The translations under genes were made by a program, and so were the position numbers. From assembly GCA_010909165.1 (NCBI GenBank), contig MU008213.1, positions 188,402-252,401 of the forward strand: a stretch of 64,000 bases of DNA, given 5' to 3'. This document shows positions 3,701 to 32,129 of the stretch, in pieces. Under the pieces are notes generated by a model, which did not search any database, had not been told where the DNA came from, and saw nothing but the letters and a program-made list of their open reading frames with translations. Position 1 is the first letter of the stretch. Each line of letters starts with the position of its first letter. This DNA is from Anthoceros angustus. Lineage: Eukaryota; Plantae; Anthocerotophyta.

Positions 3701-6166
3701 TTGGTAGCTTGAAAGCCATGTAAGCTGTCAAAATTTTGCAGAATTATCTTGCGAGATTCTTGTGCTCAACGGTATTTTAAGGCTGAAATATGGGCTATGT
3801 TGGTGACGCAGTGTGGAGAACAAGATTCAAGCAGAACATCTCCAATTGGCGTATTGGCGTGGTACCCTGGCAAGGTTTCAACCCAATCCTGGCTTTGGTA
3901 GAAGTCGCCGAGAGCGGAGGCATCGCCAGCTGTTGCAGCGAGCAGAGGGGAAAAGTACTTGGATAGCAAGGCAGGGGCATTCATTTCGGCGAGCATTCCG
4001 CCTCCGTTCAAGTTGCGGTCACGCCAAAGCAGAATCTTCGGCCGAGAGCTTTTAAGCTTGAGGAGCATGCGTTGAAGCCGCGGCTGCCACATTGATGGGG
4101 CATGTGCTCCATCCTCCAGAATGTGCGTCCGCACTTCTGCAAAAAGTTGGATAATCTATAGTAATGGCCTCAGGAAATTGGGAATGCCCTGGCACTGCTG
4201 TAGAGATTTTTGTCTAACCTCAACTTGCTGTGGCGTCAACGCAGCTCTGTAGCTGCAAGTGGCAAGAAGCCTTTACCCATAGGATGCAAATTGGGTCGGG
4301 CGAACAGTGCTTGCGCCGATGCCTCATGCGTATTCAGGGACTGCAGTGGCGTCATTCTGTTTGCAGATTGAAGAAAACATCCTCATGCGCCATGCGTTAT
4401 TGATATCTGGGCTGCTCCTTGCAGTCGCACATGGTCTGGGGTAGCTTGGACAGCCCAGCTGAGGCTGAGTGTAAAAGCGGAGATATGATGGACACGAGCA
4501 AGGCGGGCCATGGCGAGCAGCACGCCCCACCGAGAAGCTTGCAGAGAAGTGACGGACTGACAAGAGGGGAGAGATTGACGAGGCAATTGTGTCAGGGCAA
4601 TGAAGAGGTCACATGATCCCAAAAGCTGGTTCCTCCGGAAGCAGGCACTGCCTCGGAGTGTGCGTGTCCGTCAGCTGGAGGTGAAGCTGCGGCTGCTTTG
4701 CTGCTGCCCAGTGCCGGTGCCCCGCAGACGACTCCAATGCATAACGGGCGGCATAATGCCGCGGCTGCCTCGGACCTTGCATGAATCTGTTGTGTATTGT
4801 GGCTGCGAACGGTAGTGGCAGGGGCAGTGGTGGAAGAGGCAGTGGCAGTGGCAGTGGCAGCCCAGAGGGGGTGTGGGCCGCCTGCGGTGCCTCGGGGAGT
4901 TACCACCTGTGCGAGCAGCAACCTCGAGATGGGCAATTTTGGTGCCTTGCTTGTGCAGGCAAGGCGAGGTGGTAGAAGTTGGCCCCTATTGCGGCTGGTA
5001 GATGTGTGGCCTAGCTGTGGAAGTAGGTAGCTGCAGTGGCCCAGCTGACGGTTTCCACTCGACTAGATGCTTATGGCGCACGTCAGGCTGAATGGAAGAG
5101 AGAGCATGAAGGAGTAATGAAAATGGCAGCCAGCTCTGGTGCTTTGTTTGTGTGAGGAGTAATATGAAGTTACATGATAGAATAGAAGTGATGGTGGTGG
5201 CGTCAGTACGAGGACGGCAGCGTGGCCAGGTGTCCGAGTTGTACAGCAGGGTTGACGACGACTTTAATACGAATACATGTACAATGAATGGTGGTTGCGG
5301 TGTGACAATAACTTCCAGGGAGTTTGAGACCAGCCCGCAATCAGAGGCAAGATTTGGCCGTAGCAAAAAATATCGTGACAGAGGTAAGGTAGGTGGGCAG
5401 TTGAATGCAGTGTGGAAGCAGCAGGGTCATAGGGCTCGAGAGTGAACGAGCTACTACATATGGCGCCGAAAATTCTGTTGTTTACACTACAGTCGCGGAA
5501 AGCACGCATAAATGGAAGGAGTACTTGCTATGATCTCAAATGATTGACCAGGCTACTTCCTGTGGGCTGTTCCTGCCCGCACTCTCAGCCCAAATTTCAT
5601 ATGTAGGGTGTGAAGTGTGAAGAGGAGGAGACACTGGACAGGCCAGGCATGGTCAAAGCCTGTGAATGTACCTAAGCGGGATCGAATCGACTGTCACCGA
5701 TCAGTTATCGTTACCTATCTATCTGCATCTTTTGCAGTCTGGAGGTGGCAGTCAATCTTTGTGAATCTCCCAGCCATAACACGCGGGTCAGAGACTATTA
5801 AGCAATGTACAGTGTACAGTATAAGTAAGCGAAGAGGAGTCTACGCTGGCCGGATGTGTGCTGTACAAGAACGGATGCAGTTATGTATACTGTTCCTGGA
5901 AACCACCATCCGAATCCGGTTCCGATTCCTTCACATGTGTGGTTTGACATTAGAGTAAGCGCAGCGGGAATCTGATCCGTGGCGGTCGCCCTTGCTGGAG
6001 GACAAGGGCATTGCGTTCTCCGAGGCGGAGGCCTGAATCAGGCTGCTGAGTAGCTTGGCTTTGGCCCCATACATATCATGGAGCAGCAGCCGCGGCAGTG
6101 GCAGGTGGGCTGGGGCCCCATGTCTGGAGAGCGAAAGCGAGGTGGTGGCAGTGATGAGAGCAGAGA

Positions 6167-6214
6167 GGCAGTGGCAGTGGCAGTGGCAGTGGTAGTGGTA
6201 GTGGTAGTGGCAGT
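6167..6214. repeat. (GTGGCA/GTGGTA)n hexamer microsatellite
   Basis: Read directly from the sequence. Confidence 0.9.
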
Positions 6215-6904
6215 GTGTGTGGTGACTCCTCTCATGTCATCTGTGATGAGCGGCGAAACGATCCTCCTCGTTGCTGGCACCCTGGCCACCGTAGCAGCAC
6301 TCCAGCAGTCGGACTCCAGCTCGGGCTGTATGCGGCTGCCTCCACTGGTGAAAACACACAGTCGGTGGCCTGTCAGGGGACGAAATGCCAGTGTGGAGAG
6401 TCCACGCTGGAAGCTCACATGGAGCCCTTTCACACGGGTTGGTGGGGGAGAACGTGGGTCTCTCAGAATTGGATTATAGTCTAGACCAAATCAGTGTGGG
6501 AAAAGAAGCAGCGGAGGCTGATGGAAGGGAATGGAGCCTGAGGGAAGAGGAAATGGAGCGTATTGTACAATAAGTGCACCTGAGCGCGCACATGCGCGGG
6601 GGCAGGGTAGTCTGCCTTGGTGGCTTTGGCCGCGACCCGAAGTCTGGGGTCCCATGGTTTGTTTCACTCGAGAGTCGGGCCTCGGCCGACCCGACCCAGC
6701 CCGACCCGGTTCCCCGGAAGTGAAACATGGCATGTCGCGACTGACAAGGCGCGGAGTCCCAAGCGCCAGCTGGCGGTGAATGGCTCAGCGCCGACCCACG
6801 ATCAGCTGGCAAAGGCATGCCCATCGCCGGGCCTTGGGCCTGGGCACTGGGCAGCCGGCTTCATGAATGAAAGAGGCAGCCTGCAGGGCAGGAATGATGG
6901 GCGC

Positions 6905-6950
6905 TGGGGCCGGGGCCGGGGCCGGGGCCGGGGTCGGGGCCCGGGGGCCG
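6905..6950. repeat. (GGGGCC)n hexamer microsatellite, G-quadruplex-prone
   Basis: The sequence reads ggggccggggccggggccggggccggggtcggggcc. Confidence 0.9.
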
Positions 6951-8187
6951 TCCCGCTCCACCCGTTCCCGTTCCATCAGGAATATTATGGTCCGGACACA
7001 ACAGTATGTTTGGAGGGTGCGGGTGCGGGGCCCCGAGCGTGGTGACAACGTAACGGTACCCGGATACCCGCCCACAAGCACAAGCCGTGACCTCACCTTT
7101 CCACCTCAACATGCCATGCCATGACCCAAGGGGCGGACCATCTTTGCTCCTGGGCGCTGGGCGGTGAGAAATAATCACTCCGGGGGCCCCCATGAAGGCT
7201 GTGGTGTTCGGGGTGCTCATGTTCAGGTGAGATTCATCATGAACCATGATACTCGCGCCATGCAGAATATGCATAATGCAATGTTATGAGAGGGGTCTTG
7301 CAGCCAGGCCAGGCCAGCCCAGGCAAGGCCAGGCCAGCTGCAGTGCACAGGCCTGATGAGGCCGCCCCCGAGGCGATAGGCGATGAGGAGAAGCGAGCAG
7401 ACAAGATAATCATTTGGTGCAAGCTGGCCTGTTGCAGCTGGGGCCCCCTACGTGCTGCGTGCTGCGGCGGTACACAGTCCACACATGCATATGCACGGCA
7501 GACTGTATGTTCCTGTACATATGTATGTGCACAGGATGTTACATGTGCACATACATACATATGTACATGGTATGTAACACCAGTGCCAGGTGGCATGTAC
7601 ACATGTAGGCCGGGCATCTTGGGTATGGTATGTGCATCGTGGTTATGTTGTGAGGAGGCGGAGGCGTGTCTTTCGACAGGATCAAGACAAGGGGGAGGTT
7701 GGGCAAAATCTCGTCGGGAATCGGAATGGAGAAGCAGGCGGCAGGATGAAGGCAACACAATTGCAAGCAAGGAATCATGGAGGCAGCGCTGGCAGTAGGC
7801 ATCTCAGATTTGGGGGGCATCAGCATCGATATCCAGATCCCCGAGAACAAAATCAAGCCCGCGTGTCTTAAGTCAAGCGTCCTGATGCCCCATGAATCCA
7901 CGTGAAGCCACGGCTTGCTGAGAATAGGCGGCCCGAGACGGGCCGGGCCCGGTTCGCCCTGGCCCCCAGGCCCCTGGCGCTGTGGGAAAGTGGAGGTCAC
8001 GCCATCCCGTGGCCACACAAGCGACACTGCTTCCAACATCAATCACGCAAGCAACGCCAGTCTTCACCGATTAGGAGACACGAACACATTCATCTGTTCA
8101 AATCAAATGCAGAATGCAGGCACAAACACACATACATACACATACATATGTTCATACCATACGTCATATGGTGTGTGACAGTGAGAT

Positions 8188-8231
8188 CCCTGCCCCTGCC
8201 CCTGCCCCTGCCCCTGCCCCTGCCCCTGCCC
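8188..8231. repeat. (CCCTGC)n hexamer microsatellite
   Basis: Read directly; about 7 units. Confidence 0.9.
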
Positions 8232-8700
8232 TTCCTTCCATGACCTGTACGGTGGGAGTACGGGTGGAAATAATATTATTACTGTATTACGCAGCCGGGC
8301 GCTACATAAACGTTGGGCAGCTCCTTTTGCCAGGCAGTCAGCTATGACCCAATGCCAGGATGGGCATACACATGTAGTCAGGCTGCTTGTACCTGCTGCT
8401 GCTTTTGTGGGCTTGTTTGTATTGAAACTCCAAGGGATTCTGGCTTCCCTTCACGTGATCCAATTCAATGGCACATATGTAAATCGGAATCAGGGTCCCT
8501 TGGCAATGCCACATCCACAGCTTGGCCCGGACCCGGACCCGGACCCCGGCCCACCCATGCTTCTTTGTGTGTGTGTACCTACCAGCCTCCTCACCTCCAA
8601 AGCCTGCTGCCTGCTGCCTGCTCCTGCTGCCTGCTGCGCTTCCTACAGGTCGTATACACCCATGTGACTAAGGAATCGGATTCCAAATTTTGTTGAGGGC

Positions 8701-26319: not shown

Positions 26320-26699
26320 ACCCCCATATCTCGCATTATCATTACGCGCACGCAAAATCCTCTACATATGTCCCAATTCCGCAAGCTTATACTCTACTTC
26401 CCTTCCCTTCGAAGACATAACAACACACAAGCCCCAGGATTTCTCCGCCCGGCATCGAATTTAACATGAATATAAATATATATACATATAATTGAGAATT
26501 ATATTTTATTAATTTCCTATTGACTTATATGATATTATATAGGAAATAATACATCTCCTGTCACGAAGGTGGGGCCTATCACGAAGACGCGGCCACAGCC
26601 CGCCCTGCCCTAGAGAGGATGCCCGTCATCGCCATGGGAGTCCAGCGTGTTGAAGTTCCAGCTCGCGTGCCCTTCTGTCTCGAAGTGCACCCCCCCCGG

Positions 26700-27400
26700 G
26701 GAAGCCCATGCTGATCTGAAATCCCCCTGCCCGGCCCGGCCCGGCCCGCCGGTCGTTGGCATTCATCCGATCACACATGATGTTCCTGGTGATGGGATCA
26801 TGGCACCACATCAGGGCTCGGAGGTTGGATGGCGATGGTGAAGGTGAAGCACTGTCGGCCGGTGAGGCAGCGCCCTGGGAGGCAGCCTCTCCGTCAGCCT
26901 TTCCAGCTGATTCCAGGCCTGCCATCGTTGTCAAGACTGCTGCGAACATGTACCGCTTACGGCAGTGAGGAGCTTCTGCTTCTCATCCGTCTGAGCCTCT
27001 GCGGCCGAGAAAAGGGAGATAGCCTCCTCGAAGATGATCTGGCCCGGTTGTGACTGAAATTGAAGGAAAACTGGCAGCCACAGCGCTTGCAACCATCTCT
27101 TTCAGCAAAGCATCCTGGAGAGTGAAGACTCGCAGCAGGTTGTGCACTCGCGGCAAAGCCGCTTGACACTCGCATTGCCCCTCCTTGCTGTCAATTGCCA
27201 CTCGCCTGCATTTGCCTTTATGTCAGACGCCGAGACGCAGATGCGGGATGTCAGGAAAACCTTCAGCAAAGTTTCAGCGGTCAGAGCTGGGAATTACCAG
27301 ATGACAGAGGAAGCAACAGGCACTGCATGAGGAAGAGGCGATTGAGAAAGCCGTGAGGGCAGACTCTGAGCGGACAGTGCTCTTTCAGCACAGGCATCCT
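26700..27400 (-). pseudogene. Frameshifted, truncated paralogue of the N-domain/U-box part of the 29157-31776 gene (inverted orientation)
   Basis: AALPRVHNLLRVF..LLKEM ~ [18 protein letters not shown]. After a frameshift near 27095, LQALWLPV..QPGQIIFEEAISLFSAAEAQ ~ [26 protein letters not shown]. The same GTAAGC donor position is kept. TMAGLESAGK ~ [10 protein letters not shown], and LMWCHDPITRNIMCD ~ [15 protein letters not shown]. No EF-hands follow. Confidence 0.75.
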
Positions 27401-27905: not shown

Positions 27906-29156
27906 AAGTCAAGCTAATCTTGACCTTGAAAATGTCCAAGTATCAAATACCTTGATCACTGCGCATTGATATGTCAGCAGAAGGATCCGCATCCTCTGAG
28001 GTTTTTGAACTTTACTTCGTCTCCACCGGAGTGGCTCTAGCTAGATCATGATGCTCCTGTCGTGCCAGATGATCAGCACTCTCACGTTGAGTGCTCTTCC
28101 GACTACTGGGAGATGTGTGCCCTCTAGCAGCCAGGTCTTGGCACCAGGAAGTGGGCTGTTGACAACACTTGTAGCTACGGTGCTCACACGCAGACGTATA
28201 ATCGCCCCTGCTCACATGAGAGCAAGGCCAGACTCACTGGGATGAATGGCGCCAGGTTTCCTCGTCTGGCTGACTGCCGTCTTCCTGCATCCCGACTCCC
28301 CGCATACTGTAAGAAGGAACCCTGCCTGAACCAAGATGTGGCACCACCTCCTCCTCATGCTCCTCTTGATCATGAGTACACCAAGCACCCCTGTTGCGGA
28401 GACCTAACGAGACCACCGTGACCAGTGGCAGTTGAACCGGCTGGAGCAAATCACTGGAAAAGGAGAGAAGGTCTGCGGCGATGCTGAGCAGAACAACATG
28501 TCCTCGTCAGCGACAGGCAGGGCAGACCAGCCTAGTGCAAAGCAGGCAGGGCACCGGCAGACCGGCGGGAAAAAGGCGCCATCGAAGGAGACGCGAACAA
28601 GGATTGGCATCCATTTCTAGAGGTTTTACAGGGATTTGCTGGCCTGAGCTTGGAGCAGCCTGGACTGGTTGTGCATTGAGATTGTGTGTGTGCTGAAATG
28701 AGCCCGAATCGGTTCTGCATTGCGATTGCGTGAGCCCGAATGCGGGAGGTGCAAGTGGCGTCGGCTGGACGTGCGCGCTCTGGGGCACTGGTACCCACGA
28801 CGACTGTATGTCAGGCAAATGGGCACGGAAGGGAAAGGGATTTTGCCCCCCGACCGCATTGGTGCGACTTGGATCCGTCTGCTGTTTGGTGGGCCCACGA
28901 GACTTGGTCCTGATGCTCTGCTTCCTCCCAAACTTCCTTGCGTGTGAGCTTCATATCAGCTTTGCTTTTCCTACTTTGCCTGATGGAGCTCTCTCGGGGT
29001 GGTCGGCGCGGATCCTGCACCTACGACTGAGCGCCAGGCTGAAATCCCGGTCTGCGGCCGAGCTCGATCGGGCTCTGATCCGATTCCGGACTGGGCTACG
29101 GGACCATAAGACCCTCACGGCTGGTGGATGCGTTCGGTTAGCAAGGGGGTGCAGGA

Positions 29157-30218
29157 ATGGGGCTTCCGGAGGGTCCGGTGAAGGCGGCCATCTCTGCTGC
29201 GGAGACGCTGCTGAGGATCCTGCTCTTGGGCAAGGGATTGTGGGATCAGCAGCATGATGGCGGCGGCGGTACGGATGATGTCGCGGTGGAGCTCAATGCG
29301 TTTATGCGGAATCTGGAGGACAACATCCAGGTGCTGAGTGGCAACACCTTGATGCACAAAAACGCCGCAACATGGGCCAATGGTACGCGCAGCGCCGTGG
29401 GGTTTCACCAATTTTCACCGACCTCGGGCCTGGACGGAAGAGGGCACTTGAGCTGAGGTGTGGTGTGGTTTTGTCGTGCGTGCTTGTTTGCAGAGGCGTT
29501 GCTGGTGGATCTGCGGGACGGAGCCAAGGAGGCGCATAAGATCCTGGGCAAGGGCTTCTTTGAGTCGGTCTGGGATGCCAAGAAGGTGTACTCGGAGCTG
29601 CGGCTGCTGCGTGAGCGCGTCGTCACCCCTTTCCAGATTGCCATCTTGTTCACTGCCTTGGATGTGGGTGGCTTTCACAACTCTTCTAAGCTTGTTGTTT
29701 GGTTGCAAGCTCGGAGGAGGTTTGCGATTCCTGTGCTTGGGTGCACTGCGAGGTGGAGTGACAATATGCTTCTTCGCTTGGTTGGGGCTTGGGTGCAGGT
29801 GGAAATCGAGAACCCTGACAACAAGGAGGAGTTCGAATCCGCCTTGTCTAGGGTTCAAAGCCTTCTCAAGGCCCTGACAAGCAGCAGCGCTGCATCCCTC
29901 AAGGATGTCCTGCAACAAGAGCTGCAAGGGCTGTGGCAACCTGTGCGGGCTGAGATGCAGGCGCGTCCCAACCAAATCGACGAGGCCCTCTTCTTCCTCA
30001 AGGCATCAGACCCTCAGATTGATGCTGTGCGGCAGTTCTTCTCTGGAGTAAGCCGGATAAAGCTTTATCTCTTGCTGCAGCTGGTGGGTTATGGCCACAT
30101 TGCAACACCGTATCCCGTGTGATTGGTACTAATGGGGCTCGTGTGCTGCTGTATATGTTGGAGTGAAGATTGTGGCGGAACTGGAGGCGGAGAAGAGCAA
30201 GAGGGAAGCCACTGCCAG

Positions 30219-30249
<31 letters not shown>

Positions 30250-30929
30250 CCTGCGCCCCACAGCAGCAACTCCTCTAAGAAGATTCCGGCAACAGACACC
30301 CTGAAGTGGTACCACGACCCCGTCACCTGGGAGGTGATGTGCGATCCCGTAAAGGGCAGCGACGGCCGGACATACGACAGATGGACCTTCATCGACCACG
30401 CCAGCAGCATGAAGCGCAGCCCCTTCGACCGCAGGGAGGATCGACCCCTCAAGGTCGAGTTCGACGACATCGACGCCCGCAGCAGGCTCTTTTCCAAATT
30501 CCCGGAGCAGGAAGAGAAGTACCGGCAACGGCGGAAGGAGTACCGGGCGGAGGCGCTGCGGCTGGCCGGGCAGCGGCTGTGCGGAGACGCGCTGCTGATG
30601 CTCCACAACGTGCTCTCCTGGGCGGAGGACGACCAGGAATGCAAGGCCAAGAAGCAGGAGCTGCAGGCCCGGTTCCCGAACCTCACGCCCGAGAAGGTGG
30701 GCGAGTTCAAGGAAGCCTTCGTCCTGTTCGACCGCGACGGGGACGGGGGCATCTCCATCGACGAGCTGGGCGTAGCGATGCGGCTGGTGGGCACCAGCCC
30801 CACCGAAGCGGAGCTGCAGGCCGCGATGCGCGAGGCGGATGTGGACGGGGACGGGAAGATCGACAGCCTGGAATTCCTCAACCTCATGTTCCAGGAGAAC
30901 GAGGGGAGGTCGGGATCGCCGCCGCCGCC

Positions 30930-30982
<53 letters not shown>

Positions 30983-31776
30983 TGACCGTAGAGCAGATGG
31001 CTCGGCTGAAGGAGGCCTTCGACGTGTTCGACAGGGACGGGGACGGGCAGATCTCGGCGCAGGAGCTGGGCACGGCGATGCGGCTGCTGGGCCACAACCT
31101 GACCCCGGCGGCGCTGCAAGAGCTCATGGACGAGGCGGACCGGGACGGGAGCGGGACGGTGGACTTCCCGGAGTTCCTGGCCATGACGCTGCGCGACGAC
31201 GGCGCCGTCACCGACTCGCAGCAGCAGCAGCGGCAGCAGCAGCAGCAGCGGCTGGTGATGACGCCGGACCAGGTGGTGCGCTACACGGAGCTCTTCGCCA
31301 TGGTGGACGGGAACGGCGACGGGAGCATCAGCGCGCGCGAGCTCAGCTCCGCGCTGCGGCTGCTGGGGCACGACGCGAGCGAGGCCGCGGCCGCGGCCTT
31401 GATCCAGGAGGTCGACATGGACGGGAACGGGAGCCTGAATCTGGCGGAGTTCCTCATCTTCATCGCCAAGTACAGCGGCGACGAGGGAGGCGAGACGCCC
31501 ACGCCCACGCCCACGCCCACGCCGCCGCAGCAGGAGGCGGATCCGGCGCTGACGGCGGCGCAGATCGCGCGGTACCGGGAGCTGTTTGGCGTGATCGATC
31601 GGAACGGCGACGGGCTCATCACGGCGCAGGAGCTGGGGGTTGCGCTGCGCCTCGCGGGCGAAAGCGCGGACGACGCCCAGCTGCAGGCTGCCATGGACGC
31701 TTACGACCGGAACGGGAACGGGACGCTGGAGTTGTCGGAGTTCCTGCACTTCATGGCGGCGCAGGAGCGGCCCTAG
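29157..31776 (+). CDS. Helical N-terminal domain + U-box-like domain + TPR-like hairpin + 8 EF-hands (four calmodulin-N-lobe-like units), about 750 aa, 4 exons
   Basis: join(29157..29382,29494..29663,29799..30047,30169..31776), phase-consistent. The last acceptor (GTGAAG|ATT, with TACTAAT branch-like motif upstream) is less certain. U-box: [26 protein letters not shown]...SPFDR. EF loops: [96 protein letters not shown]. The linkers contain polyQ and (PT)n. Confidence 0.85.
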
Positions 31777-32129
31777 CAGGAGTAGCCTCGCCTGAGGCCT
31801 GAGGCCTGAGGTGAGGAGCTCGGCTCACGCCGCCGCAGCTCCGCGACTTTCTCTTTTGAATCAATTTTCACTACTTAGTACATAATAAAAATGAATAATC
31901 ATCTTTCTCTAATTTTGTTTATCATCATCATTTGGAGTATTTTGCATCATATTCTAAATTTTTAATTCATTTTAATTTATTTAGATATAACATAAATATT
32001 CATATATATTATATCTAAATAAATATTTAGATATATCCGTGACTTTCTTCATGTGGTCTATCGGGATGATTTGTGACCACCTCGGGAACTACTTTACTCC
32101 CGAAGATCCTTCAAGTGTTTTTTAGAACG

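Follow-up and report, generated by a model that had tools for sequence, protein, structure and literature searches.

A predicted U-box ubiquitin ligase with a calmodulin-like array of eight EF-hands in Anthoceros angustus

Introduction

To our knowledge, Ca2+ reaches the ubiquitin system of plants indirectly, either through the phosphorylation of ligases by CDPKs and CIPKs or through calmodulin binding in trans. In the CDPK/CPK and CCaMK kinases, a catalytic signalling domain and canonical calmodulin-like EF-hands are contained in one polypeptide, a design referred to as sensor-responder. Here, we describe a gene of Anthoceros angustus (Anthocerotophyta), located at positions 29157-31776 of the plus strand in a window of 64,000 nucleotides (assembly GCA_010909165.1, contig MU008213.1, positions 188,402 to 252,401), whose predicted product comprises a helical N-domain, a U-box, a TPR-like helical hairpin and eight EF-hands arranged in four calmodulin-like lobes. 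All coordinates given below are those of this window. We favour the reading, with a probability of about 0.6, that the gene encodes a plant U-box ligase in which the calmodulin-like array serves as a Ca2+-switched target-binding slot. The likeness to CDPKs and CCaMK is an analogy only, as the catalytic parts are not homologous: the effector here is a U-box ligase and not a kinase, four N-lobe-type pairs (8 EF-hands) are present as compared to one N plus C pair (4), and no autoinhibitory junction is recognised.

Among described U-box proteins, the same order of a helical N-domain, a U-box and a C-terminal protein-binding module is found in the UND/MCAfunc proteins of plants such as AtPUB13 and AtPUB45 (type I/III, MCAfunc and U-box with or without Arm), in which MCAfunc/UND precedes the U-box in an architecture described as ancient in streptophytes (PMC8049495). 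The Anthoceros gene resembles the AtPUB13 type in having MCAfunc and PUB10_N clusters as language-model neighbours of its N-domain and in the presence of ARM repeats in one branch of its paralogues, and differs from it in the lack of a Pfam MCAfunc match, in the divergent Ufd2/E4-like U-box with a conserved TPR-like hairpin and in having an EF-hand array instead of ARM as the C-terminal module. With calmodulin and CML proteins it shares canonical loops, a similar helix A and a high sequence similarity of each lobe (E 1e-24 to 1e-36); however, all four lobes are N-lobe-like, polyQ and PT linkers replace the central helix, and the array is fused to a putative enzyme. The Cbl RING ligases likewise unite a four-helix bundle and an EF-hand with a RING-like domain, their TKB domain (four-helix bundle, EF-hand and SH2) preceding the RING. 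The single EF-hand of Cbl is a structural part of this substrate-binding TKB, N-terminal to the RING, and although the Cbl TKB bundle is found among the fold matches of the paralogue P0004 (6xar, Z 9.3), homology is not indicated. Finally, the first ~125 residues are likened to MLKL_N, RPW8 and the coiled-coil (CC) domains of NLRs by the fold of the P0004 model, by co-linear MLKL_N matches and by atlas neighbours, all of them sub-threshold, while the kinase or NB-ARC partners of those proteins are lacking in this gene.

Domain organization of the predicted protein

A first-pass annotation had proposed at this locus a four-exon gene whose last exon, very rich in GC at third codon positions (GC3), encodes a U-box, a TPR-like hairpin and four N-lobe-like EF-hand pairs with eight loops of the Ca2+-binding pattern, joined by polyQ and (PT)n linkers. 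Each of these elements is borne out, including the linkers, which are present in the translation as described. Exon 4 (30169-31776) is intronless and encodes the U-box, the hairpin and the EF-hand array. Its start (30169-30294) encodes a helix continuing the N-domain (residues 2-23 of the model; residue numbers in this section are those of exon 4), followed by an Ala-rich low-complexity linker with a CAG-repeat tract, in which the predicted local distance difference test (pLDDT) value falls to ~52 and at which the transcript contigs break (30208-30260).

The U-box (30295-30513, residues 43-115) is recognised concordantly by Pfam, AlphaFold, Foldseek and VIA. The Pfam U-box profile PF04564 matches exon 4 with 31.0 bits as compared to a gathering cut-off of 21.4 (E 2.8e-7), and the AlphaFold model of residues 1-177, built with 82 homologous segments, has a mean pLDDT of 88, with values of 95-98 in the U-box. 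When this model is used as a query in Foldseek, the top 20 matches are U-boxes without exception (20/20; E4B, OsCIE1, E4A, CHIP, GmPUB13 and Ufd2) with a probability of 0.97-1.0 and E-values of 5e-3 to 6e-2, and the best of the structural hits are U-boxes in complex with E2s. VIA comparison of residues 43-115, which is independent of Foldseek, aligns the U-boxes of OsCIE1 (Z 8.2, root-mean-square deviation (rmsd) 2.4, 70/77 residues), Ufd2 (Z 8.1) and CHIP (Z 8.0), with rmsd values of 2.4-2.9 over 69-70 residues. By sequence, this U-box is nearest to the Ufd2/E4 type, and the 8-ligand Cys/His pattern is absent from its sequence, in keeping with a RING-like cross-brace fold devoid of zinc ligands. 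The DPV of loop 1 and the SPF of loop 2 align with the DPI/DPL and DPF of the E4A and E4B U-boxes at E2-contact positions, and among 82 sequences of the family there is hardly any variation at D50, P51, M57, D59, P60, V61, G66, T68, Y69, R71, T73 and P85.

Directly after the U-box, the TPR-like hairpin (30514-30678) is modelled as helices 112-134, 138-151 and 156-168 with pLDDT values of 93-98, and residues 124-171 match TPR motifs in VIA with Z values of 7-7.5 and an rmsd of 1.3-1.9. Its first helix is basic, amphipathic and conserved, and the conserved pattern of the hairpin is common to all members of the subfamily described below, the paralogues devoid of EF-hands included. An ESM Atlas feature search with exon 4 returned a single weak row (0.75), a TPR protein. 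Based on these models, the identities of the U-box and of the TPR-like hairpin stand.

The remainder of exon 4 encodes the EF-hand array, in which Pfam recognises eight EF-hand_1 stretches and four EF-hand_7 pairs (E 5e-58). Lobe 1 (30679-30903; loops at residues 188-199 and 224-235) abuts the hairpin with almost no spacer, and no distinct autoinhibitory junction segment of the CDPK type was seen between the two in the exon-4 sequence and model. A Pro/polyQ linker with a CAG repeat (30904-30978), where contigs break at 30906-30990, leads to lobe 2 (30979-31203; loops 288-299 and 324-335), which is followed by lobe 3 (31255-31479; loops 380-391 and 416-427) and, after the (PT)n linker, by lobe 4 (31546-31773; loops 477-488 and 513-524). 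All eight loops fit the canonical pattern D-x-D/N-x-D/N/S-G-x-I/L/V-x-x-x-E. When each lobe is searched alone against PDB sequences, the best alignment is in every case with the N-lobe of calmodulin (residues ~3-79, E 1e-24 to 1e-36), namely with calmodulin residues 4-76 for lobes 1 and 4, 3-87 for lobe 2 and 5-79 for lobe 3.

The CAG-type repeats at 30208-30260, 30906-30990 and 31211-31266, encoding polyAla or polyGln, coincide with the linkers between modules and interrupt every short-read assembly of the transcript; they are candidate sites of length polymorphism.

Gene structure and transcription

The gene is an intact four-exon gene with an ATG at 29157 and a stop codon ending at 31776, and its coding sequence comprises 2250 nt (750 codons) in an intact frame. 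Exons 1-3 encode the N-domain, with the first helices of the four-helix-bundle-like domain in exon 1 (29157-29382), its middle part in exon 2 (29494-29663) and its C-terminal helices in exon 3 (29799-30047). The introns of 111 nt (29383-29493), 135 nt (29664-29798) and 121 nt (30048-30168) are all of the GT..AG type (3/3), and each is absent from transcript contigs. This was established by aligning the contigs of four public runs to positions 28900-32100. In run X1 (organism A), the contigs are 100% identical to the window with exactly the three introns removed, which fixes the proposed exon coordinates at the joints 29382|29494, 29663|29799 and 30047|30169. These contigs are regarded as spliced RNA because exactly these three introns are missing, the run type itself being a guess. 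They span 28974-31912, broken solely by CAG repeats and further low-complexity tracts (30208-30260, 30906-30990 and 31211-31266), and thus define the minimum extent of the 5' untranslated region (UTR; 28974-29156, on a contig that begins at 28974 and continues into exon 1) and of the stop codon with the 3' UTR (31774-31912, on contig 31318-31912).

The joint 29663|29799 is likewise present in runs X2 and X16, as is 30047|30169, which carries a synonymous ATC there and on which the linkage of the N-domain exons to the U-box critically depends. Both joints are found in organisms B and C, whose contigs are 90-95% identical. In organism B, a single contig links exon 2 via exon 3 to the U-box, and a second one, sharing 20 nt with it, continues from the U-box to the first EF-hand. 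Hence, this nuclear gene is transcribed and its RNA is spliced in three organisms; the transcript is represented by several contigs, none of them full-length, with the assemblies breaking at the repeats. Exons 1-3 also align with the N-domain of the Marchantia paralogue P0004 with identities of 33%, 48% and 23%, respectively, exon 3 aligning in addition with exon 3 of the related genomic contig L001, and the P0004 alignment therefore provides independent support for the gene model. When the U-box and the hairpin are compared with those of organisms B and C, 13 of 19 listed differences concern codon position 3, a bias that points to purifying selection.

GC3 amounts to 0.95 in the EF part of exon 4, 0.82 in its U-box part and 0.67-0.82 in exons 1-3. 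The higher value of the EF part is the sole hint of a separate origin of this part. The further proposal that the gene was made by fusing a CML-like exon is not supported in this form, as a single exon encodes the U-box together with the EF-hand array, uninterrupted by an intron.

Several other observations were made in and around the gene. Two antisense open reading frames (ORFs) of 583 and 360 amino acids over 29998-31749 are without support and were rejected as by-products of the GC3-rich sense frame. A second spliced contig of X1, aligned to 29799-30402 with 31 and 9 mismatches and with a different 118-nt stretch replacing 30044-30276, is probably the transcript of a paralogue. The minus strand carries, some 2.3 kb upstream of the gene, a short and decayed U-box-like fragment (26752-26814, within the minus-strand ORF 26626-26949), which has 47.6% identity to the U-box of the gene over 21 residues (E 5e-4) and is probably a paralogue remnant. 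Right after the 3' UTR, at 31880-32010, the GC content falls sharply in an AT-rich block with an imperfect palindrome, which may be a transposon end, and the 500-nt bins profiled between 32000 and 42000 all have GC values of 0.34-0.50.

A subfamily with exchangeable C-terminal modules

A word search with the U-box part retrieved 15 proteins, and all 13 of those with a named source are from liverworts. The best matches of the gene are liverwort paralogues with 53-60% identity. An exhaustive phmmer search of 1.84 billion representatives yielded 110 proteins at E <=1e-3 and 65 at E <=1e-10, and on these sequence comparisons the subfamily is a small divergent U-box lineage, distinct from the majority of plant U-box proteins. 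The members with a named source belong to Marchantia, Riccia and Calypogeia (liverworts), Ceratodon (moss) and Adiantum (ferns), and among such named members the subfamily is found only in non-seed plants. The Pfam U-box is matched by 91 of the 109 subfamily representatives. Most full-length members share a helical N-domain of ~215 residues ending in a conserved motif, the U-box and the hairpin, while the slot after the hairpin is either empty or occupied by TPR, ARM, a kinase or SPRY, the last in some cases together with a ubiquitin-like domain; in a few members, it is in front of the U-box that another domain is found, namely a DUF676 hydrolase, NB-ARC or ARM. As judged by these alignments, the Anthoceros gene belongs to a U-box subfamily of non-seed plants in which the C-terminal modules are exchanged, a context which the first-pass annotation did not have.

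EF-hands were found in only one of 119 family proteins, P0001, which has 12 EF-hands in six pairs with 11 strict loops. The genomic contig of P0001 (L001, a Logan contig of SRR33208241; gene at 4606-8301, plus strand) exhibits the same four-exon layout and the same N-domain exons. Lobes 2 and 3 of the window gene each have the lobe of the same number in P0001 as their counterpart (59% and 48% identity, respectively), and on this positional pairing the EF-hand array predates the split of the two genes. Since that split the lobe number has come to differ, with four lobes here and six in P0001, and no synteny is seen between the window and L001 outside the gene. The L001 gene also contains one degenerate loop in pair 5 and a long Pro/Gln/Ser-rich repeat before the last pair; its automatic gene call began inside the last exon and lost the N-domain exons.

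Other fusions of the subfamily U-box and hairpin are observed after an NB-ARC domain in P0030 (Calypogeia fissa), after a DUF676 alpha/beta-hydrolase in P0009 (P0013-P0015 having, by eye, a like N-terminal region) and before protein kinase domains in P0023 and P0050. In bryophyte NLRs, hydrolases, kinases and CC-like bundles have been reported as types of N-terminal domain, and the hydrolase, kinase and NB-ARC partners may hint at an immune role for the subfamily.

The N-terminal domain

The helical N-domain lies directly upstream of the U-box in the alignments and in the AlphaFold model of the Marchantia paralogue P0004, from which, rather than from this protein, the evidence on its fold is derived. 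Residues 1-130 of P0004 are modelled as long antiparallel helices with pLDDT values of 80-93. In a fold search with residues 4-126, the potato Rx CC domain is found first (Z 11.9, rmsd 2.0, 105/107 residues), at a level where Z values below ~13 are common for helical bundles, and Sw-5b SD, MLA13 CC, MLKL (Z 9.1), NRG1 CC-R (Z 8.6) and HET-S HeLo are among the top 35. A search of PDB by Foldseek with the whole P0004 model reached a best E of 0.18 only, a shape search of the ESM Atlas with this model (436 residues, partly disordered) gave TM values <=0.25 except for two matches of 65-77 residues, and the N-domain profile retrieved only coiled-coil noise from PDB sequences.

At the level of profiles, MLKL_N is the most recurrent Pfam family at relaxed thresholds, with matches in 6 of 27 subfamily N-domains (best E 1.4e-4) that are co-linear over ~100 residues and score 13-18 bits, below the cut-off of 27. 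None of the 27 N-domains reaches the MLKL_N gathering score, and the window exons show no match to this family. MCAfunc (PF19584) has no match in exons 1-3 at E <=1; it is also absent from the best 25 of 109 families matched by the 27 subfamily N-domains at E <=5, and at most one member could match it. Language-model neighbours in the ESM Atlas are the MCAfunc, PUB10_N, RPW8 and MLKL_N clusters, all from streptophytes, at 0.77-0.85, with the feature neighbours of MCAfunc at 0.82-0.85; these values serve as leads only. Thus, three concordant though weak lines, namely fold, profile and language model, suggest that the N-domain belongs with the four-helix-bundle N-domains of plants, in keeping with the UND/MLKL-type bundle proposed earlier.

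Proposed mode of action and alternative explanations

Since paralogues hold protein-interaction modules at the position of the EF-hand array, the array is most simply interpreted as a Ca2+-switched target-binding module. In the favoured scheme, the U-box would bind a charged E2, and upon a rise of cytosolic Ca2+ the eight canonical EF-hands would be loaded, with each lobe opening its hydrophobic cleft in the manner of calmodulin. Connected by flexible polyQ and PT linkers, the lobes would then clamp amphipathic helices of target proteins and bring these targets to E2~ubiquitin, which would render their ubiquitination Ca2+-dependent. It is from sequence that we infer the E3 activity, the Ca2+ binding and the Ca2+-dependent capture of targets. 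The main alternative is that the array acts on the ligase itself, as an intramolecular switch resembling that of CDPKs. At rest, binding of the E2 or dimerisation of the U-box would be blocked either by the EF lobes or by a helix to which they bind in cis, such as the basic amphipathic one of the hairpin or one belonging to the N-domain, and Ca2+ would relieve or impose this block, so that catalysis and not substrate choice is gated. The placement of the array immediately behind the hairpin, the character of the first hairpin helix and the CDPK precedent of a catalytic domain fused to a calmodulin-like domain are compatible with such a switch. However, the hairpin is retained in paralogues without EF-hands and hence did not evolve as an EF junction, a separate autoinhibitory segment is not visible, and four lobes on long flexible linkers look like a multivalent binder rather than a compact switch, which leaves this mechanism unlikely in our estimation.

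Several features weigh against a Ca2+-switched ligase as such: the Pfam match to the U-box is restricted to positions 5-48 of a 73-position profile, the domain diverges in its second half and has the usual L-x-P-N motif replaced, the U-box of P0004 was left unfolded by AlphaFold when modelled from a 20-row alignment (pLDDT 33-45), and the architecture is limited to a few close lineages and could therefore have arisen by a recent fusion and be of minor importance. A rival explanation in this direction is a young chimeric gene of little or no specific function, with a weak or dead U-box and the EF-hand array as a passenger or Ca2+ buffer, to which the presence of only one other cluster of this kind among all the representatives searched, the unstable lobe number and the expandable CAG repeats in the linkers would also conform. 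Against it stand the 750-codon frame kept intact with RNA spliced in three organisms, the third-position bias of differences, the canonical state of 8/8 loops, the near invariance of the core U-box residues and the positional orthology of lobes with P0001, and we consider a chimera without function quite improbable. Less credible still is a Ca2+-controlled executor of cell death at membranes, as entertained in the first-pass annotation, in which the N-terminal bundle would insert into membranes like MLKL, RPW8 or NLR CC domains and the U-box and EF-hand array would regulate its release or turnover. The Rx, MLA13, MLKL, NRG1 and HET-S fold matches, the co-linear MLKL_N matches, the RPW8 and MLKL_N clusters beside MCAfunc in the atlas and the one NB-ARC-bearing member of the subfamily speak in its favour; however, all these signals are sub-threshold (Z <13, 13-18 bits as compared to 27, atlas <0.9), the fold was modelled on a paralogue, and the same N-domain heads every member of the subfamily whatever its C-terminal partner. 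We know of no AtPUB13-type ordinary U-box ligase that acts as a cell-death executor. Moreover, the nearest neighbours, MCAfunc and PUB10_N, are N-terminal domains of U-box ligases of the ordinary kind, AtPUB13 among them (PMC8049495). As MCAfunc/UND domains also precede the U-box in such ligases, the N-terminal half appears conventional, and the idea of a death-type or membrane-active domain is weakened accordingly.

Implications

In open-access papers and bioRxiv, no description of a U-box plus EF-hand protein, of a U-box plus HeLo protein or of this subfamily was found, which agrees with the earlier impression that no family of this architecture had been described. The gene can thus be viewed as a putative plant ligase of the N-domain, U-box and partner type with an unreported kind of partner, analogous to CDPKs. 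If the Ca2+-switched ligase is real, the fusion of a calmodulin-like array to a U-box would connect a Ca2+ spike with ubiquitination within a single polypeptide, and would represent the ubiquitin-ligase counterpart of the CDPK sensor-responder design. More tentatively, and as a speculation that we would not expect to hold in full, the four lobes might operate as independent, low-affinity and fast N-lobe-type sensors, through which the ubiquitination of proteins resembling calmodulin targets would track the amplitude of local Ca2+ spikes, with the MLKL/CC-like bundle coupling this response to signalling in immunity or cell death in a land-plant lineage that diverged early; if true, this would constitute a new class of Ca2+ sensor-responder alongside CDPKs. 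At the level of the family, the gene exposes an apparently undescribed subfamily with a variable slot for TPR, ARM, SPRY, kinase or EF-hand modules, which is useful material for asking what N-domains resembling MLKL_N, RPW8 and MCAfunc do in U-box ligases.

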